From positions 124,001-188,000 of the forward strand of contig NIVC01000245.1 in NCBI GenBank assembly GCA_002269645.1: DNA of 64,000 bases. The letters run 5' to 3'. This DNA is from Macrostomum lignano (lineage: Eukaryota). A model generated the notes under the pieces. It was not told where the DNA came from. It worked only from the letters and a program-made list of their open reading frames with translations, and did not search any database. The stretch's first letter is position 1; every line of letters begins with the position of its first letter. Positions 19,131-55,937 of this stretch are shown here, in pieces. The position numbers and the translations under genes are program-made.

Positions 19131-19443
19131 TCTAGCTAGTGCGTCCAAGGGCGAGTTAATGTCATTAACTGCCTGCTAATTTGCATTAAATTAAGTTTGA
19201 CATAGACAGTTTGTTTGATATTTCGGTTATCTTCAAGTTTCGTTCGTTTAATTCCAACACCCACAAGCAAGCGGGCTTAAATGTAGTCTATGGCATTAAA
19301 AGGCAAGAATAAGTGCCCGGCGGGCACAAAGGTCATGGTACAATGAATATTGAACATCTACTAAAATGTCTAAATCTACTAAATAGAATTGCGGTAGAGA
19401 AGCACTCTTAACAGATAATAGTAAGACGAAACTCAATATTATT

Positions 19444-19481
19444 TGCGACGCGTTTCGGCTAAAACTAGCCATCTTCAGGCA
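19444..19481 (-). ncRNA. Minimal type I hammerhead ribozyme (PLE pLTR, left arm)
   Basis: Exact reverse complement of 22611-22648. Confidence 0.8.
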
Positions 19482-19622
19482 CTATCGAACAGAATTTATT
19501 TCAACTTATTAAATACTGTGTAGACGACAAAATCAGGTATTGAAAAGATATAAAAGGACTAAAGGATCAATGTACAGTATAGCAATGTTCATAATATTTT
19601 TTTGTGGAATGACAGGACAGAG

Positions 19623-19666
<44 letters not shown>

Positions 19667-19693
19667 GCGTATGCGCCCCAAATGTACTCTAGC

Positions 19694-21673: not shown

Positions 21674-22425
21674 GCATGCTTAATTTCCAGGCGTTGTGCC
21701 CCAGGGAATGGAAGACGGGAGTCATTCGTTGTCTGCTTCATCGGGCCTATACAGTATGTTGCTCTTGGTCGTTGCTGCACAACGAGTTTACCAACATTAT
21801 CAATATTCTCACTGCCAATGGATACCCTATTAACTACATCATGAAGGTTATTGGTAATTTCTTAGATGAAAAAATTGAAAAAAAGCTTAAACCTAAACGG
21901 CCAGATAGAGAACCAGGAGAACCAATCTTGACTCTTCCGTTTTTGGGCAACTCTTCGATTGTGTTTAAGAGGCAAATTCGCAAAACTTGCCAAAAATTCT
22001 TTAAGACTAAGATTCATGTAGTGTTCCGTACTCATAAAGTCAGTCAATTCGTTGGCAGTTTAAAGTCTCGTGTTCCATGTGCTCTCAAGGCAGGTGTCAT
22101 CTATCGTTTTCGTTGCTCTGTTGACCAGAGCATTACCTACATTGGTAAAACCAAGCGACACCTACTCACGAGAGCCAAGGAACATAGACAACGAAACTCT
22201 CCGATTCAGGAACATTTGCTGCAATGCCATGGTTGTTGTGATGAGCCAGACATAACCTCTCATTTCAAGGTCATAGACAACAGCAAAAATGAGCATAAAC
22301 TTAACATTCTTGAAGCTCTGCACATTAAGTTACACAAACCCATTCTCAATGTCCAACTATCTGGAGGAGGTGCGAGTGAACGGCTGTTGGTGTTCTAAGC
22401 TAGAGTACATTTGGGGCGCATACGC

Positions 22426-22469
<44 letters not shown>

Positions 22470-22610
22470 CTCTGTCCTGTCATTCCACAAAAAAATATTA
22501 TGAACATTGCTATACTGTACATTGATCCTTTAGTCCTTTTATATCTTTTCAATACCTGATTTTGTCGTCTACACAGTATTTAATAAGTTGAAATAAATTC
22601 TGTTCGATAG

Positions 22611-22648
22611 TGCCTGAAGATGGCTAGTTTTAGCCGAAACGCGTCGCA
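22611..22648 (+). ncRNA. Minimal type I hammerhead ribozyme (PLE pLTR, right arm)
   Basis: tgc-CTGAAGA-t-GGCTA(gttt)TAGCC-GAAA-CGCGTC-gca: catalytic core, 5-bp stem II, palindromic ACGCGT in place of stem III, GUC cleavage triplet and a 3-bp stem I. Confidence 0.8.
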
Positions 22649-24529
22649 AATAATATTGAGTTTCGTCTTACTATTATCTGTTAAGAGTGCTTCTCTACCG
22701 CAATTCTATTTCGATATCAACAAGCGCTACAATGACGTGACTGTCCCCTATCTTCGTAAATCTACTAAAACATGAATACATTTAATGGCGCTAGAAAAGT
22801 TAGTAATTAGGCCTAGCTTAGTTAAAATAGTAACAATCATTTATCAATAAACCAGCAAGCTGAGACAGCAACCAGCATGCTACCATAGTGTAAATAAATA
22901 ACTGTAGTCGTGCTGTCAATTCTACATTTTAAGCAAATGTGGCAGGCGAAATGCCATACTGACTTTGCTATATCATCGTTTAACTAAATTTTTCATTAAT
23001 TGCATGCGATTTTTTTTTCATTTTTCCATTCGCTGTCATTATTCATGTCACTCGTCCTTTAAATGTTTAATTCCCTTTGCTTGACATGGACTTTTTTCTT
23101 TCTTTTTCTGGTTTTTGCTATCCCTTCTTTGGAACTTTTGTTTTTCTGCGCGCTGTATTAACGTATTTGCGCCTTGTCCACCCCGTTAATTTTTGTTGCC
23201 CATTGCTCAGCCCAGTGCATGTCCCCAGCGTTCGAACAGTTTCTCTGTGTTATTTAAACCGCTGTTCTGAGCCCGGTCTTTTTCATTACTCTTGCCCTCT
23301 GCCTCCCCACCTCCGCTCTACGTTTTCTCCCGCTCGTTTAGCGTTAAATTTGTGACTGTTTCGTTTAATAACCAAGCTTAATCAGCCAACTGCAAGTTTT
23401 ATTAATTTAGTTTAGTTTTCTTTGTAATTAGCACCCCGGTGCCGCTGCAAATTAATCTTGGTCGACAAATATAATTTACCCTAACCTACCTGCTGCTCAT
23501 TATCGGACATTTAGTCACCTACTAGTTAATTTAACTAAAATTAAAAATTAATAAGTTACGCTAATTATTTATTCGTTGACGTTAAGCCATAGCCTATCTT
23601 GAGTTATTTGTCCGTGGGACGTAAAACAACCAAGTTCTCATCTCAAAGAAAGCTCTGAGACTTATACGTTCCGTAATACGAGAATTACGGTGGTGGCAGC
23701 TCTCTCTACCCTACTGCACCCGACGACAACCGGCTAGCCGGGCCAAAAGCTTACAAAATCATCGGGCTAACCGGCAGGAAAGCGCGCTCTCGAGCTCTCG
23801 CTTCTCCCGGCTAGACGGGCCCAAAGCGCGCTCCCATACAATCAAATGGGAGTGTATCAATTGAAAGCTTTTAACGGGTGTTTAATAACAATTTGCAGTA
23901 TAAAAATCGACGTTTGTTAATATTAATTCGCTTGCATGTAATTTGAAAACAAAATTTACAGGAATGAGCTAGGGTTCCTGTGTTCAACGTTCAACAAAAG
24001 CTTTTAAGGCATATTTGTTGTGCTACTGTGCATTGCTGTGCTGGCCTATGCACTAGACTAAACAAGTGAAGGCTTCGTGTACAAGATAAATGAAAGGAGC
24101 TTTTCTGAAATTTCTTGTGCATTATTATGTTATTGCTTAAGTAATTTTGTTCTATCGACTATAGTTTAAGCTTGTCACGTGTCAGTTAATTAATAATACA
24201 GGCATTTGAAATATAAATGTAGGTCTAATATTTTGAGAAGTAACTTATAAGCTGCTTTTATTCAATTATAAAAAGGCTTCAGTTCAATTAAATTCTATTT
24301 ATTTAGCTATAGCCCTATGTATGTAGGAAAGCCTATTGAGCACTAAGCCTGGGCCTAGCTTATTGACTGACTTGGACTTAATGAATAGATTTAGCTAACT
24401 TACTAGATAAGAGCCTTAAAATTTTTGTTTTTTCTATCTATCTACTTTATGTATACCAATAGGCCTAGACTAAATAGCAAACTATAAAACTAAGCCTACA
24501 ATATTTTATATCAAATACCTGATGTTTGA

Positions 24530-26100
24530 CTTATTTTCCTTTCCTTAGTTCCCCTCTCCCCTAACCTTGGATTTCCTCCTTCTAACCCTGGCTTCCCTTC
24601 CTTGACCTTGGCTTCCCTCCCCCTGACCCTGGCTTCTCTCCTTACTGACCCTGGTTTCTCTCCTCCCCTGACCTTGGCTTCTCTCCTCCCCTGACCTTGG
24701 CTTCCTTCCCCTAACCCTGGCTTCTCTCCCCTTGACCCTGGCTTCTCTCCACTTGGCCCTGGCTTCTGTCCCCCTGACCCTGGCTTCCCTTCCCTGATCC
24801 TGGCTTCTCTCATCCCCTGACCCTGGCTTCTCTCCTCCCGTGACCCTGGCTTCTCTCCTTCCGTGACCCTGGCTTTTCTGTGCCTAGCCCTGGCTTCTCT
24901 CTCCCTGACCCTGGCTTCCCTTCCCTGACCCTGGTTTCTCTCCCCCTGACCTTGGCTTTCCTCCCTTGACCCTGGCTTCTCTCCTCCCCTGACCCTGGCT
25001 TCTCTCCTTACTGACCCCTGGCTTCTCTCTCCCTGACCCTGGCTTCCCTCCCCTGACCCTGGCTTCTCTCCCCCTGACCTTGACTTCCCTCCCTTGACCC
25101 TGGCTTCTCTCCTCCCCTGACCCTGGCTTCTCTCCACTTGGCCCTGGCTTCTCCCCCTGACCCTGGCTTCTCTCTGCCTGGCCTGGCTTTTCTCCTTACT
25201 GACCCCTGGCTTCTGTCCCCCTGAACCTGGCTTCCCTTCCCTGACCCTGGCTTACCTCCCCTGACCCTGGCTTCTCTCCTCCCCTGACCCTGGCTTCTCT
25301 CCCCCTGACCCTGGCTTCCCTCCCCTGACCCTGGCTTCTCTCCCCTTGACCCTGGCTTCTCTCCACTTGGCCCTGGCTTCTCTCTCCCTGACCCTGGCTT
25401 CCCTCCCTTGACCCTAGCTTCTCTCCCCCTGACCCTGGCTTCCCTCCCCTGATTCTGGCTTCCCTCCCTTGACCCTAGCTTCTCTCCCCCTGACCCTGGC
25501 TTCTCTCCCCCTGACCCTGGCTTCCCTCCCTTGACCCTAGCTTCTCTCCCCCTGACCCTGGCTTCCCTCCCCTGACCCTGGCTTCCCTCTCTTGACCCTA
25601 GTTTCTCTCCCCTGACCCTTGCTTCTCTCCGCCTGGCCTGGCTTTTCTCCTTACTGCTGACCCCTGGCTTCTCTCTCCCTGACCCTGGCTTCCCTCCCCT
25701 GACCCTGGCTTTTCTCTGCCTGGCCCTGGCTTTTCTCCTTCCCTGACCCTGGCTTCTCTCCCCATGACCCTCGCTTCCCTGCCCTGACCCTGGCTTCCCT
25801 CCCCTGATCCTGGCTTCTCTCCCGCTGGCCTTGGCTTCCCTCCCTTGACCTTGGCTTCTCTCCCCAGACCCTCGCTTCCTTCCCCTGACCCTGGCTTCCC
25901 TCCCTCCTGTCCCATGGCTCCCTCTCTCCTGAACCCTGGATTCCCTCACTCCTGACCCTTGTTTCCCTCTCTCCTGACCAATGGCTTTCTCTACTGACCC
26001 ATGGCTTCCCTCACTCCTGACCAGTGGCTCTGCCTCCTTGCTCTTTCCCCCCTGGTCTGCCTCCTGGTTTTCTGCCCTCTGCTCTGTCCGCACGGCTTTG
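24530..26100. repeat. C-rich minisatellite (ccctgaccctggcttctct) in the left foldback arm
   Basis: Variable 19-24-bp units read directly. Confidence 0.95.
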
Positions 26101-31999: not shown

Positions 32000-34890
32000 G
32001 CGGGGGCAGAGCAGGGGGCAGAAAACCAGAGGACAGAAAAGCAGGGGGCAAAGGAGCAAGGTAGAGCAGACAGCAGACGTCAGAGCAAGAGGGCAGAGCA
32101 GGGCAGAAGTTACGGGTCAAGAGGGGTCAGGAGAGATGTTTAAAAAAGAAGGGAGCGAGCCATGGGAGAAGGAGGGCCATGGGCGAACAAGAGAGGGAGC
32201 CATGGGTCAAGAGGGAAGGAAACAGGGGTCAGGAGGGAGGGAATCCAGGGGTCAAGAGGGAGGGAAGCCAGGGTCAGGGGAGGGAAGCCAGGGTCAGGGG
32301 AGGGAAGCCAGAGTCAGGGGAGGAGAGAAGCCAGGGTCAGGGGAGGGAAGCCAGGGTCAGGGGAGAGAAGCCAGGGCCAGGGGAGGAGAGAAGCCAGGGT
32401 CAGGGGAGAGAAGCCAGGGTCAGGGGAGGGAAGTCAGGGTTAGGGAGAGAGAAGCCAGGGGTCAGTAAGGAGAGAAGCCAGGGTAAGGGGAGGGAAGCCA
32501 GGGTCAGGGAGAGAAAAGCCAGGGATCAGTAAGGAGAGAAGCCAGGCCAGGCGGAGGGAAGCCAGGGTCAGGGGGGGAGAAGCTAGGGTCAAGAGAGGGA
32601 AGCCAGGGTCAGTAAAGAGAAGCCAGGGTCAGGGGAGGAGAGAAGACAGGGTCAGGGGAGGGAAGCCAGGGTCAGGGAGAGAGAAGCTAGGGGTCAGTAA
32701 GGAGAAAAGCCAGGCCAGGCGGAGAGAAGCCAGGGTCAGGGGAGTGAAGCCAGGGTCAAGGGAGGGAAGCCAAGGCCAGGCGGAGAGAAGCCAGGGTCAG
32801 GGGGAGAAAAGCTAGAGTCAAGGGAGGGAAGCCAGGGTCAGGGGGAGAGAAGCCAGGGCCAGGTGGAGGGAAGCCAGGGTCAGGGGAAGGAAGCGAGGGT
32901 CTGGGGAGAGAAGCCAGGGTCAGGGGAGGGAAGTCAGGGTTAGGGAGAGAGAAGCCAGGGGTCAGTAAGGAGAGAAGCCAGGGTAAGGGGAGGGAAGCCA
33001 GGGTCAGGGAGAGAAAAGCCAGGGATCAGTAAGGAGAGAAGCCAGGCCAGGCGGAGGGAAGCCAGGGTCAGGGGGGGAGAAGCTAGGGTCAAGAGAGGGA
33101 AGCCAGGGTCAGTAAAGAGAAGCCAGGGTCAGGGGAGGAGAGAAGACAGGGTCAGGGGAGGGAAGCCAGGGTCAGGGAGAGAGAAGCTAGGGTCAGTAAG
33201 GAGAAAAGCCAGGCCAGGCGGAGAGAAGCCAGGGTCAGGGGAGTGAAGCCAGGGTCAAGGGAGGGAAGCCAAGGCCAGGCGGAGAGAAGCCAGGGTCAGG
33301 GGGAGAAAAGCTAGAGTCAAGGGAGGGAAGCCAGGGTCAGGGGGAGAGAAGCCAGGGCCAGGTGGAGGGAAGCCAGGGTCAGGGGAAGGAAGCGAGGGTC
33401 TGGGGAGAGAAGCCAAGGTCAAGGGAGGGAAGCCAAGGCCAGCGGGAGAGAAGCCAGGATCAGGGGAGGGAAGCCAGGGTCAGGGCAGGGAAGCGAGGGT
33501 CAGGGGAGAGAAGCCAGGGTCAGGGAAGGAGAAAAGCCAGGGCCAGGCAGAGAAAAGCCAGGGTCAGGGGAGGGAAGCCAGGGTCAGGGAGAGAGAAGCC
33601 AGGGGTCAGCAGTAAGGAGAAAAGCCAGGCCAGGCGGAGAGAAGCAAGGGTCAGGGGGAGAGAAACTAGGGTCAAGAGAGGGAAGCCAGGGTCAGGGGAG
33701 GGAAGCCAGGGTCAGGGGGAGAGAAGCTAGGGTCAAGGGAGGGAAGCCAGGGTCAGGGAGAGAGAAGCCAGGGGTCAGCAGTAAGGAGAAAAGCCAGGCC
33801 AGGCGGAGAGAAGCAAGGGTCAGGGGGAGAGAAACTAGGGTCAAGAGAGGGAAGCCAGGGTCAGGGGAGGGAAGCCAGGGTCAGGGGGAGAGAAGCTAGG
33901 GTCAAGGGAGGGAAGCCAGGGTCAGGGGGAGAGAAGCCAGGGTCAGGGGGAGAGAAGCTAGGGTCAAGGGAGGGAAGCCAGAATCAGGGGAGGGAAGCCA
34001 GGGTCAGGGGGAGAGAAGCTAGGGTCAAGGGAGGGAAGCCAGGGTCAGGGAGAGAGAAGCCAGGGCCAAGTGGAGAGAAGCCAGGGTCAAGGGGAGAGAA
34101 GCCAGGGTCAGGGGAGGGAAGCCAGGGTCAGGGGGAGAGAAGCCAGGGTCAGGGGAGGAGAGAAGCCAGGGTCAGGGGAGGTAAGCCAGGGTCAGGGAAG
34201 GGAAGCCAGGTTCAGGGGGACAGAAGCCAGGGGTCAGTAAGGAGAAAAGCCAGGCCAGGCAGAGAGAAGCCAGGGTCAGGGGGAGAAGCCAGGGCCAAGT
34301 GGAGAGAAGCCAGGGTCAGGGGAGGAGAGAAGCCAGGGTCAAGGGAGGGAAGTCAAGGTCAGGGGGAGAGAAGCCAGGGTCAGGGGAGGGAAGCCAGGGT
34401 CAGGGAGAGAGAAGCCAGGGGTCAGTAAGGAGAGAAGCCAGGGTCAGGGGAGGAGAGAAGCCAGGGTCAAGGGAGGAAAGCCAAGGTCAGGGGGAGAGAA
34501 ACCAGGGTCAGGGAAGGGAAGCCAGGGTCAGGGAGAGAGAAGCCAGGGCTAGGCACAGAAAAGCCAGGGTCACGGAAGGAGAGAAGCCAGGGTCACGGGA
34601 GGAGAGAAGCCAGGGTCAGGGGATGAGAGAAGCCAGGATCAGGGAAGGGAAGCCAGGGTCAGGGGGACAGAAGCCAGGGCCAAGTGGAGAGAAGCCAGGG
34701 TCAAGGGGAGAGAAGCCAGGGTTAGGGGAAGGAAGCCAAGGTCAGGGGAGGAGAGAAGCCAAGGTCAGGGGAGGAGAGAAACCAGGGTCAGTAAGGAGAG
34801 AAGCCAGGGTCAGGGGGAGGGAAGCCAAGGTCAAGGAAGGGAAGCCAGGGTTAGAAGGAGGAAATCCAAGGTTAGGGGAGAGGGGAACTA
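32000..34890. repeat. G-rich minisatellite (agaagccagggtcagggg) in the right foldback arm, with ~500-bp internal duplications
   Basis: Reverse complement of the 24530-26100 array. Block 32413-32912 recurs at about 32913-33400. Confidence 0.95.
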
Positions 34891-35929
34891 AGGAAAGGAA
34901 AATAAGTCAAACATCAGGTATTTGATATAAAATATTGTAGGCTTAGTTTTATAGTTTGCTATTTAGTCTAGGCCTATTGGTATACATAAAGTAGATAGAT
35001 AGAAAAAACAAAAATTTTAAGGCTCTTATCTAGTAAGTTAGCTAAATCTATTCATTAAGTCCAAGTCAGTCAATAAGCTAGGCCCAGGCTTAGTGCTCAA
35101 TAGGCTTTCCTACATACATAGGGCTATAGCTAAATAAATAGAATTTAATTGAACTGAAGCCTTTTTATAATTGAATAAAAGCAGCTTATAAGTTACTTCT
35201 CAAAATATTAGACCTACATTTATATTTCAAATGCCTGTATTATTAATTAACTGACACGTGACAAGCTTAAACTATAGTCGATAGAACAAAATTACTTAAG
35301 CAATAACATAATAATGCACAAGAAATTTCAGAAAAGCTCCTTTCATTTATCTTGTACACGAAGCCTTCACTTGTTTAGTCTAGTGCATAGGCCAGCACAG
35401 CAATGCACAGTAGCACAACAAATATGCCTTAAAAGCTTTTGTTGAACGTTGAACACAGGAACCCTAGCTCATTCCTGTAAATTTTGTTTTCAAATTACAT
35501 GCAAGCGAATTAATATTAACAAACGTCGATTTTTATACTGCAAATTGTTATTAAACACCCGTTAAAAGCTTGCAATTGATACACTCCCATTTGATTGTAT
35601 GGGAGCGCGCTTTGGGCCCGTCTAGCCGGGAGAAGCGAGAGCTCGAGAGCGCGCTTTCCTGCCGGTTAGCCCGATGATTTTGTAAGCTTTTGGCCCGGCT
35701 AGCCGGTTGTCGTCGGGTGCACCCCTACTGATAGCAATCAGCCTCGCAAATCGATGTGCATCAAATTATAACGGTGTCAGAAACTTCGGTGTCTACCATT
35801 TAAACGACCGTGCCGCTAAAAACTGCTCGCCTACGATTACAACTACCCTCCCCCTGGAATTGGAGGACCCCGGCAGTCGGAGTAATTAAACAGGAGAAAA
35901 AAAATCGTTGTGATATTCGTCTGCTCAAT

Positions 35930-39809: not shown

Positions 39810-39816
39810 TATAAAA
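39810..39816 (+). promoter_or_regulatory. Candidate TATA box of the neuropeptide gene
   Basis: TATAAAA 84 nt upstream of the ATG, followed by a possible 46-nt 5'UTR intron (GTAAGT 39843 to GCAG 39888). Confidence 0.4.
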
Positions 39817-39899
39817 TCGGCACTGATTTACACCTCCAGAAGGTAAGTTTACCAGATCGTCCATATCAATAGTATCGTCCCACCGCAGAAACTATAAGC

Positions 39900-40400
39900 A
39901 TGTCCGTCAAGCTCATTCCGACTCTCCTGTTTCTGGCATTTTTGTCGGATTATTTCTGCAACGCCTGTTTCATGGAAAACTGCGCGCCCGGTGGGAAGAA
40001 GCGATCCAATGAACAGTTGGAGCAGCATAAACAGTTTGAGCGGCACAGCGTCAGCGGTCCCTGTCTGAGCTGCTCTCACGGCTGGGGCCGCTGCTTTGGC
40101 CGCGCCATCTGCTGTCACCCGCGCGGCGGATGTCGCGTCGGGTTCGGCCCGGACACCGCCGCCTGCCGCCGTCTGCCAGCGAGCGTCCTCGGCTGCGACC
40201 GCGTCGCCACCGCCTGCCATGGTGGCAAGGGGCACTGCGCTGCCACTGGCATCTGCTGCACTGCTGGTAAACAAAGGTGTAATAGATGCAATTTCTCCGC
40301 AATTTCAATGACCTACACAGTAATTGTTTATTTCTTAATTTTAGATTCCTGCAAAACAACCAATGAGTGCAATGATGTCAAGTTTGAAATCAACTACTAA
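39900..40400 (+). CDS. OT/VP: Oxytocin/vasopressin-type neuropeptide-neurophysin precursor, 140 aa (exons 39900-40266, 40345-40400)
   Basis: 22-aa signal peptide, then CFMENCAPG (39966-39992), G-KKR amidation/cleavage site and a neurophysin with all 14 Cys (PCLSC...RCFG..ICC...GC...C...C...C...CAATGICCTA|DSC...EC). A 78-nt GT-AG phase-1 intron lies at CCxx-D/E-SC. AATAAA at 40422. Confidence 0.95.
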   Translation: MSVKLIPTLLFLAFLSDYFCNACFMENCAPGGKKRSNEQLEQHKQFERHSVSGPCLSCSHGWGRCFGRAICCHPRGGCRVGFGPDTAACRRLPASVLGCDRVATACHGGKGHCAATGICCTAGKQRCNRCNFSAISMTYTVIVYFLILDSCKTTNECNDVKFEINY

Positions 40401-40782
40401 TGCGAGATTTATACATTCCTAAATAAACAAATCTGCGCCAACTTTTATCCAAGGACTACTTGGGTACAAGGAGTTTATTAGACTAACTCCCTAATGAACG
40501 CAGGAAAACACGAAAAATAAAATGAAAAGTACTTTTTGACTTTTTTACTTCTGGCAAGTAGAAGAAGTTTTTATTCTGGGATTGTTTTAATTGCAAATCC
40601 TGCGCGATCCCGCGGGTCCACAGAACTGGACAATTTGGGAGGGAGCAGGTGCGACAACCAGGAAGAAAGCAGAGATGAGGAAAGTGGACAATGAAACTGC
40701 GAGCTAAAAAATGGATGCCGGGGAGGTTCATCCTTCCGGAGAGATTATTCGTGACTATGATTTAGAAACATGACGCTAGACT

Positions 40783-40838
40783 TTAGGTTTAGGTTTTAGG
40801 TTAGGGTTTTGGTTAGATTTAGGGTTAGGGTTAGGTTT
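40783..40838 (+). repeat. Degenerate interstitial telomere-like (TTAGGG/TTAGG) tract
   Basis: ttaggtttaggttttaggttagggttttggttagatttagggttagggttagg. Confidence 0.7.
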
Positions 40839-41061
40839 GATGGTTGAATGGTCGCTAATCAATCGTCGTAAGGCCCCAATAATGGAATTCGCAGTAAAGC
40901 TCATGGGGAGTTACTGAGATGCTAAGGCCATAGGCCATAGAGGGGTTGCTGAGAGGCCAAGGGAGTTTTTGGTAGGCCAATAATCAAAGTGACATCCCTT
41001 ACCGCCTAGACTGCGTTATTGAGTTTCATGCTTGCCGTGTCTTTAGTGCCCAATGAGTCAA

Positions 41062-42254: not shown

Positions 42255-44005
42255 GCCCCCACTCCAGCCAGCACCCCTCAACCCCCACTCCAGCCAGCAC
42301 CCCTCAACCCCCACTCCAGCACCCCTCAAGCCCCACTCCAGCACCCCTCAACCCCCACTCCAGCCAGCACCCCTAAAGCCCCACTCCAACACCCCTCAGC
42401 CCCCACTCCAGCCAGCACCCCTCAGCCCTCACTCCAGCACCCCTCAAGCCCCACTCCAGCACCCCTCAACCCCCACTCCAGCACCCCTCAGCCCTCACTC
42501 CAGCACCCTCAGCCCCCACTCCAGCACCCCTCAGCCCCCACTCCAGCACCCCTCAGCCCCACTCCAGTACCCCTCAGCCATCACTCCAGCCAGCACCCCT
42601 CAGCCCCACTCCAGCACCCATCAGCCCTCACTCCAGCACCCCTCAAGCCCCACTCCAGCACCCCTCAGCCCCACTCCAGCACCCCTCAGCCCCACTCCAG
42701 CACCCATCAGCCCTCACTCCAGCACCCCTCAAGCCCCACTCCAGCACCCCTCAGCCCCACTCCAGCACCCCTCAGCCCCACTCCAGCACCCCTCAGCACC
42801 ACTCCAGCCAGCACCCTCAGCCCCCACTCCAGCACCCCTCAGCCCTCAGTCCAGCACCCCTCAGCCCTCACTCCAGCACCCTCAGCCCCCACTCCAGCAC
42901 CCCTCAGCTCCCACTCCAGCACCCCTTAGCCCCACTCCAGTACCCCTCAGCCATCACTCCAGCCAGCACCCCTCAGCCCCACTCCAGCACCCCTCAGCCC
43001 TCACTCCAGTACCCCTCAGCTCTCACTCCAGCACCCCTCAAGCCCCACTCCAGCACCCCTCAGCCCCCACTCCAGCACCCCTCAGCCCCACTCCAGCACC
43101 CCTTAGCCCCACTCCAGCACCCCTCAGCCCTCACTCCAGCACCCTCAGCCCCACTCCAGCACCCCTCAGCTCTCACTCCAGCACCCCTCAGCCCTCACTC
43201 CAGCACCCTCAGCCCCCACTCCAGCACCCCTCAGCTTCCACTCCAGCACCCCTTAGCCCCACTCCAGTACCCCTCAGCCATCACTCCAGCCAGCACCCCT
43301 CAGCCCCACTCCAGTACCCCTCAGCCATCACTCCAGCACCCCTCAGCCCTCACTCCAGCACCCCTCAGCCCCCACTCCTGCACCCCTCAGCCCCCACTCC
43401 AGCACCCCTCAGCCCCACTCCAGCACCCCTCAGCCCCACTCCAGCACCCCTCAGCACCACTCCAGCCAGCACCCCTCAGCACCACTCCAGCCAGCACCCT
43501 CAGCCCCCACTCCAGCACCCCTCAGCCCCCACTCCAGCACCCCTCAGCCCCACTCCAGCACCCCTTAGCCCCACTCCAGCACCCCTCAGCCCTCACTCCA
43601 GCACCCTCAGCCCCCACTCCAGCACCCCTCAGCTCTCACTCCAGCACCCCTCAGCCCTCACTCCAGCACCCTCAGCCCCCACTCCAGCACCCCTCAGCTT
43701 CCACTCCAGCACCCCTTAGCCCCACTCCAGTACCCCTCAGCCATCACTCCAGCCAGCACCCCTCAGCCCCACTCCAGTACCCCTCAGCCATCACTCCAGC
43801 ACCCCTCAGCCCTCACTCCAGCACCCCTCAGCCCCCACTCCTGCACCCCTCAGCCCCCACTCCAGCACCCTCAACCCCCACCCCAGCACCCCTCAGCCCT
43901 CACTCCAGCACCCCTCAGCCCCCACTCCAGCACCCCTCAGCCCCCACTTCAGCACCCCTCAACCCCCACCCCAGCACCCCTCAGCCCTCACTTCAGCACC
44001 CCTCA
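42255..44005. repeat. 21-22-bp C-rich minisatellite (cccctcagcccccactccagca)
   Basis: Read directly. It explains the 543-aa Pro/Ser pseudo-ORF. Confidence 0.97.
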
Positions 44006-44253
44006 GCAACCCAACTCAAACAAGCACTTTTGCATCGCATTGGTCGCCTATAGTTCTGAACGTACTCATTACAAAGACAAATATGCATGTACCAGGAGCT
44101 TTCAAGTAGAGATAAAAATGGCTGACGTGTTCAATGCAGAACTCAAACGAGGGAAAGATAACTCGATCGTGTGTTACGAATTCAATTAAGCTTTTTTAGT
44201 TTACAAAGCTTTAACACACCTGATACTCTGCCGTCAACCCCCCCCCCTAACAG

Positions 44254-46808
44254 TCACGATGAGGCACTCAGGAAGCTGTGCCGCAGCAGCTCCGCGGTGT
44301 CCGCTCGCTTCCTCGGCTCATAGTCTACGCACCTGAGGTAGAAGTCCTTCAGGCCGGCTGAGAACCCGTCCGCAATCCGAGGCATCGCCCGCCCTCCGCA
44401 CCTCAGCACGGCGATCCTGAACTGCTGAACGTTCGCGTCAGGAGGCTGCATGGCCGTCAGCTCATACACGGTGCAGCCGAAGGCCCACACGTCGGTCTTG
44501 GCTGAGTACGGAATCGAGTCACAATCGCCCATGAACAGCTCGGGCGCCATGAAGTAGGAGGTGCCTTTGGGATCGACGCCTGTGCTCAGTCCGCTGGTGC
44601 CGACGATCTCCTTGGCGAGACCGAAGTCGATCAGCTTGATGACGCCCTCGTTGGTGAGCATTACGTTTGAGCACTTGACGTCTCGATGGAGAATGGCTCG
44701 TTTAGGTTGGTAATGAAGAAAGTTTAAGCCTGAGCAGATCTGCGTTTCAGATTAAGGCAGTTTTTAGCAGTTATGGAAAAATTGATTGACAGCGAATAAA
44801 ATCAGCAGAATAAAACTATGGGACATTCGCCTAGAGATGCACCTGTCTGGAGAAGTCCCTGACCCCGGACTCCTCGAACGGCTTGTTCTGACGCTGCATC
44901 AGCTCAAAGAGGCTGTGTCCGGAGACCAGCTCGGTGAAGATGTACAGCCCATCCGACTTCTGCTCGCACTTGAGGAACTGCAGAATGTTGGGATGCGAGA
45001 GTCGCTTGAGGATCTCAACTCCCCGCTTCTCCATCTCGACGGCTTTCTGCAGCTTCCCCGCTTCTCCAGGTTTTCCTAGAGGCAGCACCTTGACAGCCAC
45101 GATCTGGTTCCGGTCTGTGAGGGCCTTGTACACCTTGCCGAATCCGCCTCTGCCAATCAGTAGCTTTTTGCTGCTGTCTTGCAAGATGAAGTCCCAATTG
45201 ATAAATCCCGGATCAAGGGACTTCTTGGGGCTGAAACGGTTGTAGGGACGGACGGTGTATAAATGAATCTTTCTGTCCCATTGATTCGAATCATCATTGA
45301 CAGGGCTATGCAGCTACGAGTATTTAGAGCTCACAACATTACTCAAATCGGGTGGTAGTCTCTCACCTTCAATTATAAAATACCTACCGTGACTGTTGCG
45401 AGACCATCGCGCTTCTATGTCACATACCGACGCTCCTAAGTCTATCGTGAGTCGTGAAAAATGAAAGAGTTTCATTCTCCAAATATTTCAAATACTCCAA
45501 ATACTATAAATTCCTTAATTAGTTGAAATCACTATCCAAGAGTTCAAGCTAGCGCTGAAGGTGCCCAAATGCTGCAACTATTGTAAAGGCTGCTCCAGTA
45601 TTTGGGGATGCAATAGCTCTCATCCAGGACTCACTTAGCTACATTAAATACGACATCTTGCACTGAGTTGCCAGCGAGCGACTGAGAGGCTTCGAGCCGC
45701 TGCTGCGCGTCAGAAATCCAGGACAGCTTTGCTGACCGGTCAGCGCTCAACCTCGAATGATATTTTACGAAATCGGCCACCGTCTCGCCGTCATTTTATT
45801 TTTCAAGCCGAACATTTCCGCTCCAATTTGGTGAAAAATAAACTCCAGGGAGCCAACTGATTGATGCTGAGCGGCCAAATGGACGGCCGTGTCGCCGTCT
45901 TCGTCAGGAACTGTGAGACAGTCGGTGCCGACCTCCTTCACCAGCCACTTAAGATTTGAATCGTTAGAATTCTCGGCGGCATAGTGAAATGCAGTTCTAT
46001 CACACCTTCCACTGAGCCGAAAGCAGTCAGTTCCGATCTCTTTCTTGATTAATTCCAGCGACTCGACGCCCTGATACTTTGCAACCAAATGGACGGCCGT
46101 GTTACCCCATTTGTCAGGAACTGTGAGACAGTCGCTGCCGATCTCCTTCACCAGCCACTTCAAATTTAAATCGTCAGATGTTTCGGAAGCAACGTGAAAA
46201 GCTGTTTTATCACACCTTCCTCTGAACCGGAAGCAGTCAGTTCCGATGTGTCTCTTGATCCACTCCAGCGACTCGATGCCCTGATGTTGAGCGGCCAAAT
46301 GGACAGCAGTGTCACCGGAATAGTCAGGAACTGTGAGACAGTCGCCGCCGAACTCCTTCACCAGCCAGTTGAGACACGAATAGCATTTTCTGTTCATAGC
46401 AGCAAAGTGAGCGACTGTCTGTCCGCTTTGATCCGCAATCCTCAAGCAGTTTCTGCCTCCCTTCTCTTTAACCAGCTGCAACCAAGATTCGTCTTGATGC
46501 ATGACTGCCAGGTGCACTGGAGTTTCACACCTCCAATCATTTTTACACATCAGACAGTCGGGTCCGAATCTGTCAATCAGCAGCTCCAGGCACGACAACC
46601 TCACCGGCTTGCAGGCAACGTGATGAGCCAGTGACTGGTGCAGCACTTCGGAGCCATTCAGACGTTTATCATACCCGCCAACAGTCAGGCAGATGTTGCC
46701 GTCAACCCTATCGCAGAGTCGCAGCAGCTCCTTGCTCTCTCCAGCCTCCAGCGTCACTCTCAGCTTCCGCTTCATTTCTCGTTGCCTCAGGATTATTTTC
46801 TCATGCAT
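44254..46808 (-). CDS. Ankyrin-repeat + Ser/Thr kinase (STE11/MAP3K-like) protein, ~707 aa; exons 46808-45635 (one-base frameshift near 45795), 45305-44843, 44739-44254
   Basis: About 8 ankyrin-like repeats (ETPVHLAV, QTVAHFAA, GDTAVHLAA, KTAFHVAS...). Kinase motifs GRGGFGKV, VAVK, HRDVKCSN, DFG, GTSYFMAPE and DVWAFGC. Introns are GT-AG (329 and 103 nt) and phases fit once one A is restored. Confidence 0.8.
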
Positions 46809-47882: not shown

Positions 47883-50800
47883 AATTGCTACAGAACTGGT
47901 ACCTAATTTGTTACAGAACTGGTACCTAATTTGTTACAGAACTGGTACCTAATTTGTTACAGAACTGGTACCTAATTGCTACAGACCTGGTACCTAATTT
48001 GTTACAGAACTGGTACCTAATTTGTTACAGAACTGGTACCTAATTTGTTACAGAACTGGTACCTAATTTGTTACAGAACTGGTACCTAATTTGTTACAGA
48101 ACTGGTACCTAATTTGTTACAGAACTGGTACCTAATTTGTTACAGAACTGGTACCTAATTTGTTACAGAACTGGTACCTAATTTGTTACAGAACTGGTAC
48201 CTAATTTGTTACAGAACTGGTACCTAATTGCTACAGACCTGGTACCTAATTTGTTACAGAACTGGTACCTAATTTGTTACAGAACTGGTACCTAATTTGT
48301 TACAGAACTGGTACCTAATTTGTTACAGAACTGGTACCTAATTTGTTACAGAACTGGTACCTAATTGCTACAGACCTGGTACCTAATTGCTACAGAACTG
48401 GTACCTAATTTGTTACAGAACTGGTACCTAATTGCTACAGACCTGGTACCTAATTTGTTACAGAACTGGTACCTAATTTGTTACAGAACTGGTACCTAAT
48501 TTGTTACAGAACTGGTACCTAATTTGTTACAGAACTGGTACCTAATTTGTTACAGAACTGGTACCTAATTGCTACAGACCTGGTACCTAATTTGTTACAG
48601 AACTGGTACCTAATTTGTTACAGAACTGGTACCTAATTTGTTACAGAACTGGTACCTAATTGCTACAGACCTGGTACCTAATTGCTACAGACCTGGTACC
48701 TAATTTGTTACAGAACTGGTACCTAATTTGTTACAGAACTGGTACCTAATTGCTACAGACCTGGTACCTAATTTGTTACAGAACTGGTACCTAATTTGTT
48801 ACAGAACTGGTACCTAATTTGTTACAGAACTGGTACCTAATTGCTACAGACCTGGTACCTAATTGCTACAGACCTGGTACCTAATTTGTTACAGAACTGG
48901 TACCTAATTTGTTACAGAACTGGTACCTAATTGCTACAGACCTGGTACCTAATTGCTACAGACCTGGTACCTAATTTGTTACAGAACTGGTACCTAATTG
49001 CTACAGACCTGGTACCTAATTTGTTACAGAACTGGTACCTAATTGCTACAGACCTGGTACCTAATTTGTTACAGAACTGGTACCTAATTGCTACAGACCT
49101 GGTACCTAATTTGTTACAGAACTGGTACCTAATTGCTACAGACCTGGTACCTAATTGCTACAGAACTGGTACCTAATTTGTTACAGAACTGGTACCTAAT
49201 TTGTTACAGAACTGGTACCTAATTTGTTACAGAACTGGTACCTAATTGCTACAGACCTGGTACCTAATTTGTTACAGAACTGGTACCTAATTTGTTACAG
49301 AACTGGTACCTAATTGCTACAGACCTGGTACCTAATTTGTTACAGAACTGGTACCTAATTTGTTACAGAACTGGTACCTAATTTGTTACAGAACTGGTAC
49401 CTAATTTGTTACAGAACTGGTACCTAATTGCTACAGACCTGGTACCTAATTGCTACAGAACTGGTACCTAATTTGTTACAGAACTGGTACCTAATTGCTA
49501 CAGACCTGGTACCTAATTTGTTACAGAACTGGTACCTAATTTGTTACAGAACTGGTACCTAATTTGTTACAGAACTGGTACCTAATTTGTTACAGAACTG
49601 GTACCTAATTTGTTACAGAACTGGTACCTAATTGCTACAGACCTGGTACCTAATTTGTTACAGAACTGGTACCTAATTTGTTACAGAACTGGTACCTAAT
49701 TTGTTACAGAACTGGTACCTAATTGCTACAGACCTGGTACCTAATTGCTACAGACCTGGTACCTAATTTGTTACAGAACTGGTACCTAATTTGTTACAGA
49801 ACTGGTACCTAATTGCTACAGACCTGGTACCTAATTTGTTACAGAACTGGTACCTAATTTGTTACAGAACTGGTACCTAATTTGTTACAGAACTGGTACC
49901 TAATTGCTACAGACCTGGTACCTAATTGCTACAGACCTGGTACCTAATTTGTTACAGAACTGGTACCTAATTTGTTACAGAACTGGTACCTAATTGCTAC
50001 AGACCTGGTACCTAATTGCTACAGACCTGGTACCTAATTTGTTACAGAACTGGTACCTAATTGCTACAGACCTGGTACCTAATTTGTTACAGAACTGGTA
50101 CCTAATTGCTACAGACCTGGTACCTAATTTGTTACAGAACTGGTACCTAATTGCTACAGACCTGGTACCTAATTTGTTACAGAACTGGTACCTAATTGCT
50201 ACAGACCTGGTACCTAATTGCTACAGAACTGGTACCTAATTTGTTACAGAACTGGTACCTAATTTGTTACAGAACTGGTACCTAATTTGTTACAGAACTG
50301 GTACCTAATTGCTACAGACCTGGTACCTAATTTGTTACAGAACTGGTACCTAATTTGTTACAGAACTGGTACCTAATTGCTACAGACCTGGTACCTAATT
50401 TGTTACAGAACTGGTACCTAATTTGTTACAGAACTCGTACAGAACTGGTAATTTTCTACAGAACTGGTACATTAATTTGCTACAGAACTGGTACACAATT
50501 TGCTACAGATCTGGTACACAATTTGCTACAGATCTGGTACACAATTTGCTACAGATCTACACTACAGATGGTACACAATTTGCTACAGATCTGGTACACA
50601 ATTTGCTACAGATCTGGTACACAATTTGCTACAGATCTGGTACACAATTTGCTACAGATCTGGTACACAATTTGCTACAGATCTGGTACACAATTTGCTA
50701 CAGAACTGGTACATTATTTGCTACAGATCTGGTACACAATTTGCTACAGATCTGGTACACAATTTGCTACAGAACTGGTACATTATTTGCTACAGATCTG

Positions 50801-52195
50801 GTACACAATTTGCTACAGATCTGGTACACAATTTGCTACAGAACTGGTACATTATTTGCTACAGATCTGGTACACAATTTGCTACAGATCTGGTACACAA
50901 TTTGCTACAGAACTGGTACCTAATTGCTACAGACCTGGTACCTAATTTGTTACAGAACTGGTACCTAATTGCTACAGACCTGGTACCTAATTGCTACAGA
51001 ACTGGTACCTAATTTGTTACAGAACTGGTACCTAATTGCTACAGACCTGGTACCTAATTTGTTACAGAACTGGTACCTAATTTGTTACAGAACTGGTACC
51101 TAATTGCTACAGACCTGGTACCTAATTTGTTACAGAACTGGTACCTAATTTGTTACAGAACTCGTACGAACTGGTACATTATTTGCTTCAGAACCGGTAC
51201 ACGAGTTGCTACGGAACTGGTACATTATTTGCTACAGAACCGGTACATTTTTTGCTACAGAACCGGTACATTATTTGCTACAGAACCGGTACATAATTTG
51301 CTACAGAACTGGTACATTATTTGCTACAGAACTGGTACACAATTTGCTACAGATCTGGTACACAATTTGTTACAGATCTGGTACACAATTTGCTACAGAA
51401 CTGGTACATTATTTGCTACAGATCTGGTACACAATTTGCTACAGATCTGGTACACAATTTGCTTCAGATCTGGTACACAATTTGCTACAGATCTGGTACA
51501 CAATTTGTTACAGATCTGGTACACAATTTGCTACAGATCTGGTACACAATTTGCTACAGATCTGGTACACAATTTGCTACAGATCTGGTACACAATTTGT
51601 TACAGATCTGGTACACAATTTGCTACAGAACTGGTACATTATTTGCTACAGATCTGGTACACAATTTGCTACAGATCTGGTACACAATTTGCTACAGATC
51701 TGGTACACAATTTGCTACAGATCTGGTACACAATTTGTTACAGATCTGGTACACAATTTGCTACAGAACTGGTACATTATTTGCTACAGATCTGGTACAC
51801 AATTTGCTACAGATCTGGTACACAATTTGCTACAGAACTGGTACATTATTTGCTACAGATCTGGTACACAATTTGCTACAGATCTGGTACACAATTTGCT
51901 ACAGAACTGGTACATTATTTGCTACAGATCTGGTACACAATTTGCTACAGATCTGGTACACAATTTGCTACAGATCTGGTACACAATTTGCTACAGAACT
52001 GGTACATTATTTGCTACAGATCTGGTACACAATTTGCTACAGAACTAGTACACAATTTGCTACAGAACCGGTACACAATTTGCTACAGAACTGGTACACA
52101 ATTTGTTACAGAACTGGTACACAATTTGTTACAGAACTGGTACACAATTTGCTACAGAACTGGTACATAATTTAATTTCTACAGATCTGGTACAT
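47883..52195. repeat. 4.3-kb 22/23-bp minisatellite with two subfamilies (ctaatttgttacagaactggtac; acaatttgctacagatctggtac)
   Basis: Read directly. Identical 81-aa pseudo-ORFs 1063 bp apart (48931, 49994) show higher-order duplication. Confidence 0.98.
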
Positions 52196-52525
52196 AATTT
52201 GCTACACAACTCGGTAAATAATTTGATACAAAATTTGGTAAGGAATTTGGTGCCGAAAATCGGCTCATTTTGCAAATTTCATCCCATAATCTGACAGAAA
52301 CACATTATGATACGAAAAACAAACGTAAACAAACGGACACAGCACTGAGTTAAGTGGACCTTCTCATGGCCCTGAACACAGTGCTAAACTCGGGAATAGA
52401 TTTAAATTTAAAACACGAATAAGGTTAAAATTTATCGGATCAAAGCAGAATAATATTTCTAGAAATACTACAAGTATTTAAAAACCCTTGGGGCGCAACA
52501 CCCCAAGGGTCTCCAATATTTTGTG

Positions 52526-53211: not shown

Positions 53212-54131
53212 TCAACCAGAACTTGGGTCGCTCTCTCGCTTTGGTTCTCTCAGTTTCCTATTGGCGTCGCGTAGGTGGCTCTTCTCGTGCCGGTTGCGCT
53301 CGTCCGATCTGGCAAATTTCCGGTCGCAGAATCGGCACCGGTAGGGCCGCTCCCCAGTGTGAGTTCGTTCGTGCGTTCTCCGATGGTCGCTCCGGGTGAA
53401 GGCCTTCTGGCACATCCGGCAGGCGAACGGACGGCAGCCAGTGTGCGTGCGGATGTGGCGGGTCAACTCGTCAGATCGGGTGAAGGTCTTGGAGCAGGGG
53501 GCCATCGAGCAGACGTAGGTGCGCGGTCGGGAGGGTCCGGCTTGGTTACAGGTGTTGGGAAGGTGCTGCTGATGCTGACATTGTTGATGCTGATGCTGAC
53601 GTTGTTGATGCTGATGCTGACGCTGTTGCGGTTGCTGATGTTGTTGTTGCTGATGTAGATTAACAACGGACCAGTTAACACTGGGGAACATTTTGGGTTG
53701 GTATATTTTTAAAAATCTATGCTGCGTTATTGATTTTTTTCATTAAAAATGTTTATGATTGTGAGGATGTTACTTTTCGACAGCCTATTTTTAGAATTGG
53801 TATTTTTGTGGAAGCGAACCATGCAGGGGTCAAGAATTGCAATAAAATGAAACATTGAATTCAGTAGCTCCAAACTTTGCGCTATCGAACCTCTCCATAA
53901 CCGGCTGTTGCATCTGCTGGTAGTGATATTGATGCTGCAGTTCGTGCGGCACCTGTAGCTGCTGCGGCACTGTCGCCTGCTGATATACTTGGTGATGCTG
54001 CTGCTGCTGCTGCTCCGAGGGCAGCACAGGAAGAAACGACAAATTCTGTACCGTCTCAGCATTGCCGTGACTTTCGACGCCGGTCCCAGAGGAGCTGAGC
54101 ACCGCGGACTGGACACGGAATGGCTGCTCAC
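53212..54131 (-). CDS. egr: EGR/Krox-family C2H2 zinc-finger transcription factor (finger exon 53680-53212; Q-rich exon from 54131; further 5' exons likely up to ~54480)
   Basis: Three fingers with helices [16 protein letters not shown] and RSDERNRH, matching EGR1 RSDELTR/RSDHLTT/RSDERKR. A 41-nt GT-AG intron lies at 54172-54132. The donor ending the Q-rich exon is uncertain. Confidence 0.88.
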
Positions 54132-54862
54132 CTGTAGTATAGAAAGATTATTTGTGCAGCAACTATACTTACAGTAGAAGAACAAGCTAATGTGCTGTAA
54201 AAACTGAAATAATATTCAAGCGTTAAAGCAGAGTCGCACACGATCGCTCGCCCCCGCTGGCAGCTACTGCCTTGCCCGCATGCTAATTTTCTTGTTGTTT
54301 TTGCAGCCTACCTTCTTTGGAAATGGAGTAAATATCCTGCGGGATACCGGATGCAGGGCCCGGGGGATCGGGTAATGCGATACCGAGCTGCCTACTAGCT
54401 GGCTTCGACAGTTTCTGGGGATTTTTCTCAAACGAATTTATGCAATAGAACCCGAGAAAAAATGAAGGATGAAAATGCATTTAAGTCAATGGTTTATTCG
54501 AAACACTTCATTCACTCACTCGCACATCCACTCACCCACTCACTCACTCAGTGAGAGCAGATCAAGTTTTCTATTTTGTGCCCGAGCGTCCCAAGCACGC
54601 GGATCACCATATTAGGCATAAATGAATAATTGGTGACTTTGGTGAATTGGTAAACTGAAAGGCTGATGAAAAGAAAATTCGTTTCTAAGCCTCTTTGTTG
54701 TTAATCAATCGTCCCCAGTGCACATGGGGCCACAAAGAGCTTTGGAGGTTGGTGCAGTAACAATTACTAATTCTTTCCCAAAAAGAGCTTCTAAGCAAAA
54801 GTTGATCCGAAATTGAATTTGCAGGAAAATGCAGGTGGTTTCTTGGTCTAACACACGACTCC

Positions 54863-55937
54863 TCCGTGTTTATAGGTGACTCCTCCATGTCTATAGATGA
54901 CTCCTCCGTGTCTATAGATGACTCCTCCGTGTCTATAGGTGACTCCTCCGTGTCTATAGGTGACTCCTCCATGTCTATAGATGACTCCTCCGTGTCTATA
55001 GATGACTCCTCCGTGTCTATAAGTGACTCCTCCGTGTCTAACAGGTGACTCCTCTGTGTCTATAGGTGACTTCTCCGTGTCTATAGATGACTCCTCCGTG
55101 CCTAACAGGTGACTCCTCCGTGTCTAACAGGTGACTCCTCCGTGTCTAAAGGTGACTCCTCCGTGTCTATAGGTGACTCCTCCATGTCTATAGATGACTC
55201 CTCCGTGTCTATAGATGACTCCTCCGTGTCTATAGGTGACTCCTCCGTGACTAACAGGTGACTCCTCCGTGTCTAACAGGTGACTCCTCCGTGTCTAACA
55301 GGTGACTCCTCCGTGTCTAACAGGTGACTCCTCCGTGTTTAACAGGTGACTCCTCCGTGTCTAAAGGTGACTCCTCCGTGCCTAACAGGTGACTCCTCCG
55401 TGTCTAACAGGTGACTCCTCCGTGTCTATAGGTGACTCCTCTGTGTCTATAGATGACTCCTCTGTGTCTAACAGGTGACTCCTCCGTGTCTATAGGTGAC
55501 TCCTCCGTGTCTATAGGTGACTCCTCCATGTCTATAGATGACTCCTCCGTGTCTATAGATGACTCCTCTGTGTCTAAAAGGTGACTCCTCCGTGTCTAAC
55601 AGGTGACTCCTCCGTGTCTGAAGGTGACTCCTCCGTGCCTAACAGGTGACTCCTCCGTGTCTAACAGGTGACTCCTCCGTGTCTAACAGGTGACTCCTCC
55701 GTGTCTAACAGGTGACTTCTCCGTGTCTATAGATGACTCCTCCGTGCCTAACAGGTGACTCCTCCGTGTCTAACAGGTGACTCCTCCGTGTCTAACAGGT
55801 GACTCCTCCGTGTCTAACAGGTGACTTCTCCGTGTCTATAGATGACTCCTCCGTGCCTAACAGGTGACTCCTCCGTGTCTAACAGGTGACTCCTCCGTGT
55901 CTAACAGGTGACTCCTCCGTGTCTAACAGGTGACTCA
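54863..55937. repeat. 21-22-bp minisatellite (gactcctccgtgtctaacaggt)
   Basis: Read directly, with ccgtg/ccatg/ctgtg variants. Confidence 0.97.

Follow-up and report, generated by a model that had tools for sequence, protein, structure and literature searches.

A platytocin-type precursor gene from a Macrostomum flatworm with a divergent nonapeptide and a remodelled neurophysin loop

The 64-kb stretch of DNA analysed here (hereafter the window) carries, at positions 39900-40400 of its plus strand, an intact two-exon precursor gene of the vasopressin/oxytocin (VP/OT) type from a Macrostomum flatworm. The gene is termed platytocin-type after its nearest relative, platytocin, the VP/OT-type peptide of polyclad flatworms that was described in 2022 (Kobayashi et al., PMC8896804). 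It belongs to the VP/OT-neurophysin family and is not a new kind of system. The predicted hormone, CFMENCAPG, is an outlier at three of its nine positions, and the neurophysin that accompanies it has exchanged its hormone-binding loop for a different one. The best reading, to which we assign a probability of about 60%, is that of a functional, strongly diverged platytocin-type precursor in which the contacts between hormone and carrier, and presumably the receptor, have been rewired. Neither the sequence of the peptide nor the altered loop of its carrier seems to have been described so far.

Flatworms were believed to have lost VP/OT signalling before the report of platytocin, for which a receptor and an antidiuretic and egg-laying role have been demonstrated (PMC8896804); the first-pass annotation of this DNA was correct in naming platytocin as a polyclad peptide. 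Besides the polyclads, Macrostomum is the flatworm lineage in which a VP/OT precursor is known to survive. CFMENCAPG-amide, if the animal produces it, would rank with the most divergent natural nonapeptides of the family. The gene raises the questions of whether the salt bridge between neurophysin and hormone is dispensable, which receptor, if any, reads CFMENCAPG-amide, and whether the osmoregulatory and egg-laying role of platytocin has been kept in an intertidal macrostomid. Macrostomum lignano is a laboratory model with RNA interference and transgenesis. A rewired precursor would amount to a natural experiment on the state of a neurophysin precursor after the triad of hormone, carrier, and receptor breaks.

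Gene structure and family membership

An open reading frame (ORF) of 166 codons occupies 39900-40400 (plus strand), as the first-pass annotation described it. Inside it lies a 78-nt GT..AG intron (40267..40344, plus strand) in phase 1, which splits the codon of Asp123 as G/AT; the earlier reader saw a single continuous frame because the intron is in frame and contains no stop. The spliced precursor has 140 amino acids with exactly 14 cysteines C-terminal to the GKKR site. Read through the intron, it would have 16, since the intron contributes 26 residues that include two cysteines. The position of the intron may correspond to the boundary between exons B and C of vertebrates (residues 76/77 in the bovine protein). 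Signal peptide, hormone, and 12 of the 14 neurophysin cysteines are all encoded in exon 1, and we infer that the usual intron ahead of the neurophysin has been lost.

The precursor is laid out as MSVKLIPTLLFLAFLSDYFCNA, CFMENCAPG, G-KKR, a 19-residue spacer, and a Cys-rich domain. Residues 1-22 (39900..39965, plus strand, as are all parts of the gene) form the predicted signal peptide, divisible into MSVK, LIPTLLFLAFL, and SDYFCNA. Cleavage after Ala22, which would make Cys23 the first residue of the hormone, is predicted from the -3/-1 rule and from aligned homologues, where a hydrophobic leader immediately precedes the hormone cysteine as well. Residues 5-22 are helical in the AlphaFold model. 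The predicted nonapeptide is encoded at 39966..39992 (TGT TTC ATG GAA AAC TGC GCG CCC GGT) and is followed at 39993..40004 (GGG AAG AAG CGA) by the glycine amidation donor and the Lys-Lys-Arg cleavage site. The spacer between GKKR and the first neurophysin cysteine, SNEQLEQHKQFERHSVSGP (40005..40061), is longer than in the aligned homologues. The exon-1 part of the neurophysin domain, Cys55-Ala122 with 12 of its 14 cysteines, spans 40062..40266; exon 2 (40345..40400) encodes the C-terminal end, DSCKTTNECNDVKFEINY, with the last two cysteines and the stop codon TAA at 40398-40400. The protein ends nine residues past the last cysteine, and a copeptin-like extension is absent. A TATAAAA motif at 39810..39816, 90 bp upstream of the start codon, may serve as a promoter element; between it and 39900 there is no ATG, and an in-frame stop is found at 39870. 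A putative polyadenylation signal, AATAAA, lies at 40422..40427, 22 nt past the stop.

Assignment to the family rests on profile, structure, and architecture together. Residues 55-131 match profile positions 3-79 of the 79 positions of Pfam PF00184 (Hormone_5/neurophysin) with an E-value of 6.7e-15 and 56.1 bits, the cut-off being 27.2, and bovine neurophysin II is matched in the PDB with an E-value of 6e-8. An AlphaFold2 model of the precursor, built on 50 sequences, has a mean predicted local distance difference test score of 77, with blocks of the domain at 75-87. When that model was compared with known structures in Foldseek, ranks 1-10 were all bovine neurophysin I or II (E-values down to 6e-7, template modelling (TM) score 0.78, root-mean-square deviation 2.2 Å), and only bovine neurophysins were among its significant structural neighbours. 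The domain shares its fold with bovine neurophysin II as known from the oxytocin complexes 1NPO and 2BN2 (TM score 0.74-0.78); the two are 38-43% identical across some 80 residues, and all their disulfide cysteines are in register. In the 50-sequence alignment (the window protein and 49 homologues), all 14 neurophysin cysteines fall in invariant or near-invariant columns, and Asn27 and Gly31, which are Asn5 and Gly9 of the hormone, are present in near-invariant columns of their own.

The architecture is that of a VP/OT precursor: a signal peptide, a Cys1-x4-Cys6 ring, nine residues, and a glycine with a dibasic site (...YFCNA/CFMENCAPG/G/KKR). The motif C-x4-C-x2-3-G-[KR] was found once in the six frames of the window, where it directly follows the signal-like segment and shares the frame of the neurophysin. 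That the hormone might be a chance ORF lying 5' of a spliced neurophysin exon was considered and rejected, because signal, C-x4-C-x3-G-KKR, and neurophysin are contiguous and in frame and the motif is unique in the window.

Two hallmarks of the family are lacking, namely Pro7 of the hormone and Glu47 of the neurophysin (bovine numbering). Pro7 is not an absolute criterion of membership, as Saccoglossus has Ala7. The first-pass annotation had called the gene a textbook OT/VP-type precursor from a flatworm. Profile, fold, architecture, and the Macrostomum relatives described below uphold the assignment, and the signal, nonapeptide, GKKR site, and 14-Cys scaffold deserve the adjective; the intron was overlooked, and the hormone-binding loop is not canonical.

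Hormone and carrier among their relatives

Homologues were gathered by a profile search and with HMMER, which was run exhaustively on 1.84 billion cluster representatives. They comprise canonical VP/OT precursors of molluscs, brachiopods, nemerteans, annelids, tardigrades, arthropods, and fishes, together with two polyclad platytocin precursors (Stylochoplana pusilla BCO16375.1, P0009 in the set, and that of Notocomplana humilis, P0063). Counts at hormone positions were taken over the 75 retrieved homologues that carry a hormone. Position 7 is proline in all 75 and Ala29 (codon GCG) in the window. Position 4, a glutamate in the window, is R, T, Q, S, I, or K elsewhere and never acidic (0/75). 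Methionine at position 3 has no counterpart either, the homologues having I, V, or L (Met in 0/75). Position 8 is proline in the window and in 31 of the 75, so that the hormone is an outlier at positions 3, 4, and 7 and not at 8. The first-pass annotation was right that positions 4 and 7 are non-canonical, missed position 3, and erred in listing Pro8, which platytocin has too, as unusual. The GKKR site, which both platytocin precursors have, occurs in four of the 75 homologues, most of which have GKR. As a separate observation, the second-best HMMER match (P0005, P0043, and P0048, from metagenome and Logan contigs) is a VP/OT-type precursor of an environmental eukaryote that also has a GKKR site; its hormone is apparently split by an intron (CYIT.. 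and ..SCPWG-GKKR).

The closest comparison is with platytocin. Its precursor is likewise from a flatworm and consists of a signal peptide, a nonapeptide, Gly, Lys-Lys-Arg, and a 14-Cys neurophysin. Hormone and site are identical at 11 of 14 residues (79%; window CFMENCAPGGKKRS, platytocin CFIRNCPPGGKKRS). Platytocin is CFIRNCPPG followed by GKKRS and the window peptide CFMENCAPG followed by GKKRS, the differences being Ile3Met, Arg4Glu, and Pro7Ala; Cys1, Phe2, Asn5, Cys6, Pro8, Gly9, the amidation glycine, and KKR are kept. Over their whole length, in contrast, the precursors are 37% identical, and in that of the window the spacer is longer and the C-terminal tail much shorter. Because, between these two orders of flatworms, no part of the precursor is better conserved than the hormone, the comparison argues for long-term constraint on the window hormone. 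Given that Pro8 is common to platytocin and 31 of the 75 homologues, the single-base P7A change alone separates CAPG from CPPG, the Ala7 codon GCG being one base from the proline codon CCG. The window peptide is a platytocin derivative, reached on the best reading from the spiralian/polyclad CFIRNCPPG through I3M, R4E, and P7A.

We know of no natural family member with Glu4. Pro7 is not obligatory in receptor activation, as [Thr4,Gly7]-oxytocin is a potent agonist. The claim that Pro7 is almost invariant agrees with its presence in all 75 homologues; it has a natural exception in Saccoglossus kowalevskii, whose VP/OT-type peptide is CFISDCARG-NH2 (Odekunle & Elphick 2020, PMC7181382). That peptide resembles the one in the window in having Ala7 and an acidic residue within the ring. 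It differs in that the acidic residue is Asp5 rather than Glu4 and that position 8 is Arg rather than Pro. Since Saccoglossus is a deuterostome, its Ala7 change arose independently.

The second departure lies in the carrier. The loop bounded by the counterparts of bovine Cys44 and Cys54 does not vary in length among the sequences compared, so that its alignment is anchored by the cysteines and free of gaps. The third loop residue is glutamate in 94 of 95 non-Macrostomum neurophysins and leucine in all five Macrostomum sequences. Among the 48 non-Macrostomum sequences of the alignment, this glutamate is followed by asparagine in 44, and proline precedes the closing cysteine in 42. The window neurophysin is without this near-universal Glu47-Asn48...Pro53 hormone-binding motif. 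Its loop, C89-RRLPASVLG-C99 (40164..40196), has Leu92 (40173-40175) at the Glu47 position, and Asn48, Tyr49, Leu50, and Pro53 of bovine neurophysin II are replaced too; the platytocin neurophysin, by contrast, has the canonical C-x-x-E-N-x-x-x-P-C loop.

In the 1NPO and 2BN2 crystal structures, Glu47 forms a salt bridge with the free alpha-amino group of the hormone, and binding makes use of the aromatic and hydrophobic character of hormone positions 1-3. That character is retained in the window hormone (Cys-Phe-Met). With leucine in place of Glu47, the canonical salt bridge to the alpha-amino group cannot form. The weight of this residue is conveyed by the title of Yuasa 1993 (listed in PMC3932059), according to which Glu47 pairs with the hormone alpha-amino group and its deletion (deltaE47) leads to human familial central diabetes insipidus.

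In a set of about 15 billion predicted proteins, the close relatives number just four, all from M. lignano (A0A1I8IKP1, A0A1I8I0Z5, A0A1I8I2P0, and PAA80927.1), whose neurophysins are 81-84% identical to that of the window in amino-acid sequence. They have the same 14 cysteines, the RRLPA-x-VLG loop (RRLPAKVLG in all four), the short C-terminus, and neighbouring genes with ankyrin (Ank) repeats and a kinase. They differ in that all four gene models are neurophysin-only, without signal peptide or hormone. M. lignano and the window have the loop replacement in common, and the new loop has been conserved; the replacement therefore predates their divergence. The RRLPA[S/K]VLG loop looks like a selected new state rather than decay.

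The gene of PAA80927.1 was compared at the nucleotide level (contig NIVC01000558.1, 30.5 kb; hereafter L001), where the orientation of the Ank-kinase neighbour differs. Its neurophysin DNA is 78% identical to that of the window and has an 87-nt intron at the same codon and in the same phase 1. Nucleotide similarity begins only at about 40051, near the first neurophysin cysteine. The neurophysin exon of L001 starts at a splice acceptor 13 codons ahead of the first cysteine, directly 3' of a satellite array, and the annotated first exon (10001-10228), 10 kb upstream, encodes a non-secretory and probably chimeric N-terminus. Either the gene models are incomplete or this copy has lost its hormone. 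Over the 86 alignable neurophysin codons of the window gene and the M. lignano copy, the ratio of nonsynonymous to synonymous substitution rates (dN/dS) is 0.25 with a dS of 0.37, which indicates that the window neurophysin is under purifying selection; all 14 cysteines are kept in 5/5 Macrostomum sequences.

As an aside on these two copies, the intron is divisible by three and stop-free in both (78 nt in the window; 20419-20505, 87 nt, at L001), and its retention would keep the frame, adding 26 residues with two extra cysteines to the window protein and 29 residues to the M. lignano protein. This may be a coincidence or a tolerated or used isoform.

Processing, function, and alternative explanations

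By analogy with known precursors of the family, the product would mature in a few steps if the gene is expressed. The endoplasmic reticulum would remove the 22-residue signal peptide, and a disulfide between Cys23 and Cys28 would close the six-residue ring. A prohormone convertase would cut after Lys-Lys-Arg, a carboxypeptidase would trim the basic residues, and Gly32 would be converted to the C-terminal amide. The products would be cyclic CFMENCAPG-NH2 and a free 105-residue, 14-Cys neurophysin, probably stored in the dense-core vesicles of a few neurons. Association between the hormone and this carrier would depend on other contacts than the canonical ones or would be weak.

An acidic residue at position 4 and the lack of Pro7 should make the peptide a poor ligand of canonical VP/OT receptors. 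Any signalling by CFMENCAPG-NH2 would go through a receptor that has strongly diverged or is not an orthologue of these. None of the ORFs of 150 amino acids or more in the window resembles a G protein-coupled receptor. That hormone and carrier were rewired together in Macrostomum, with a receptor that is unrecognisable as a VP/OT-receptor orthologue or with none, is a tentative and rather doubtful proposal. Under joint rewiring, the salt bridge between Glu47 and the alpha-amino group would have gone and Arg-Arg entered the loop, and the hormone would have acquired Glu4 and given up Pro7.

A different issue, concerning novelty and not mechanism, is whether the gene has already been catalogued. 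VP/vasotocin precursor genes have been stated for M. lignano (PAA85176.1, PAA50340.1, PAA46766.1, and PAA87831.1; Kobayashi 2022, PMC8896804), and the presence of the family in the genus is therefore not new. The window gene could be one of these four entries or an orthologue of one, its peptide sitting undiscussed in databases, all the more as the window is itself Macrostomum and 175 nt of the neighbouring kinase gene are 98% identical to M. lignano. We consider this unlikely. Word-indexed and exhaustive HMMER searches of collections that include M. lignano NCBI proteins (PAA80927.1, for example) gave no protein with CFMENCAPG and, beyond the hormone-less cluster of the four proteins above (P0001), no other Macrostomum neurophysin. 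The adjacent Ank ORF reaches at best 73% identity to an M. lignano protein, and a search across about 8.3 million papers did not find the string CFMENC. Of the earlier claim of a new, divergent family member, the divergence of the peptide thus stands, and its newness holds for the CFMENC string in that literature; precursors of this family in M. lignano are already on record.

Several observations weigh against a functional hormone. In M. lignano, Kobayashi et al. could identify no clear orthologue of the VP/OT receptors (PMC8896804). No signal/hormone exon was found within 20 kb upstream of the L001 neurophysin by motif searches, by a relaxed search for Met, a hydrophobic run, and CxxxxC, or by reading in three frames. 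The sequences at hand included no hormone-bearing orthologue, so that the recent constraint measured is that on the neurophysin. The loss of the Glu47 equivalent might mean that the carrier function has been lost. Finally, no identical or near-identical protein occurs among about 15 billion predicted proteins, Logan assemblies of public runs included, which leaves the gene without transcript support from that source; the 166-residue read-through ORF and the adjacent Ank ORF had no exact match in a gene-position index, and JGI metagenome contigs scanned with the exon-1 protein and with a Macrostomum-only alignment held no relatives.

On these grounds the hormone could be vestigial. The VP/OT receptor would have been lost, the neurophysin would no longer bind and would be kept for another secreted function, and the nonapeptide would be a drifting relic, with the gene expressed and CFMENCAPG not signalling. 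Such decoupling would fit the exchange of the Glu47/Asn48/Pro53 motif in all five Macrostomum neurophysins, the alteration of three of nine hormone residues at positions without such variation in the 75 homologues, the neurophysin-only M. lignano models, the hormone exon not found within 20 kb at L001, and the report of no clear receptor orthologue in the species. Neurophysin domains also accompany other peptides, as in the deuterostome NG-peptide precursors to which the title of Semmens 2013 refers. Yet every processing feature is kept: the ring cysteines, Asn5, Gly9, the amidation glycine, KKR, and a signal peptide that abuts Cys1. A role for the neurophysin alone needs no in-frame, cleavable nonapeptide, and the excess of identity to platytocin in hormone and site (79%, against 37% overall) is unexpected after long neutral drift. 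The M. lignano models, one of them with a chimeric first exon 10 kb away, are perhaps incomplete. A vestigial hormone is accordingly judged distinctly unlikely; if it were true, the gene would document an intermediate stage in the loss of the VP/OT system from flatworms.

Least probable by far is a non-functional copy or an artefact, that is, an unexpressed pseudogene or a CFIRNCPPG precursor in which A7, E4, and M3 are sequencing or assembly errors. In its favour, an identical protein or ORF is not on record, and minisatellites and inverted duplications, which are hard to assemble, crowd the window. Against it, the frame stays open for 140 codons, the splice sites are correct, and a TATA-like box and a poly(A) signal are present; the dN/dS of the neurophysin is 0.25; the three deviant residues would take three or more independent substitutions outside repeats with the frame intact, which is atypical of assembly error; and the odd loop is independently present in four M. 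lignano sequences from two annotations.

Genomic surroundings

About 380 bp 3' of the precursor gene, at 40776-40845, lies a degenerate TTAGGG/TTAGG-like tract that resembles interstitial telomere-like repeats. The neighbouring gene at 44251-46808 (minus strand) encodes Ank repeats and a protein kinase and belongs to a large Macrostomum family. All significant matches of its Ank ORF are from M. lignano, and the last 175 nt of its kinase part correspond to the 3' end of the family member at L001 1-175. The 98% identity of the kinase stretch beside the 73% of the Ank part could be due to gene conversion or could be a hint about the source species. Taken with the 81-84% identity of the neurophysin (dS 0.37), these values would fit either an older paralogous locus of M. 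lignano or a related species of Macrostomum as the source of the window.

Around 30 arrays of 19-25-bp minisatellites fill a large part of the 64 kb and produce long spurious ORFs; examples are 1-1403, 9615-11106, 42268-44007, 47885-52230, and 54846-55936. Dense minisatellites of this unit length are typical of published M. lignano assemblies, and the family at 54846-55936 recurs at L001 (2447-2955 and 28457-28701). An inverted duplication (23715-26029 and 33411-35721) has 2.3-kb arms that are 96.5% identical, lie about 7.4 kb apart, and consist largely of 20/41-bp minisatellites. Both arms encode an identical spurious ORF of 208 amino acids (24511-25137, minus strand; 34299-34925, plus strand), and the structure is a true palindrome or else a product of misassembly.

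A Penelope-like retroelement with reverse transcriptase and GIY-YIG endonuclease occupies 19381-22711, its 642-residue ORF running from 19694 to 21622 on the minus strand. It contains a perfect inverted repeat of 1036 bp (19381-20416 against 22711-21676) and a second, partial GIY-YIG ORF placed head to head with the first (21634-22398, plus strand). Two further neighbours are ordinary genes: a VPS26 exon at 11053-11568 (minus strand; Pfam E-value 5e-72) and an ORF for a three-finger C2H2 zinc-finger protein with a poly-Gln/His N-terminus at 53212-53691 (minus strand).

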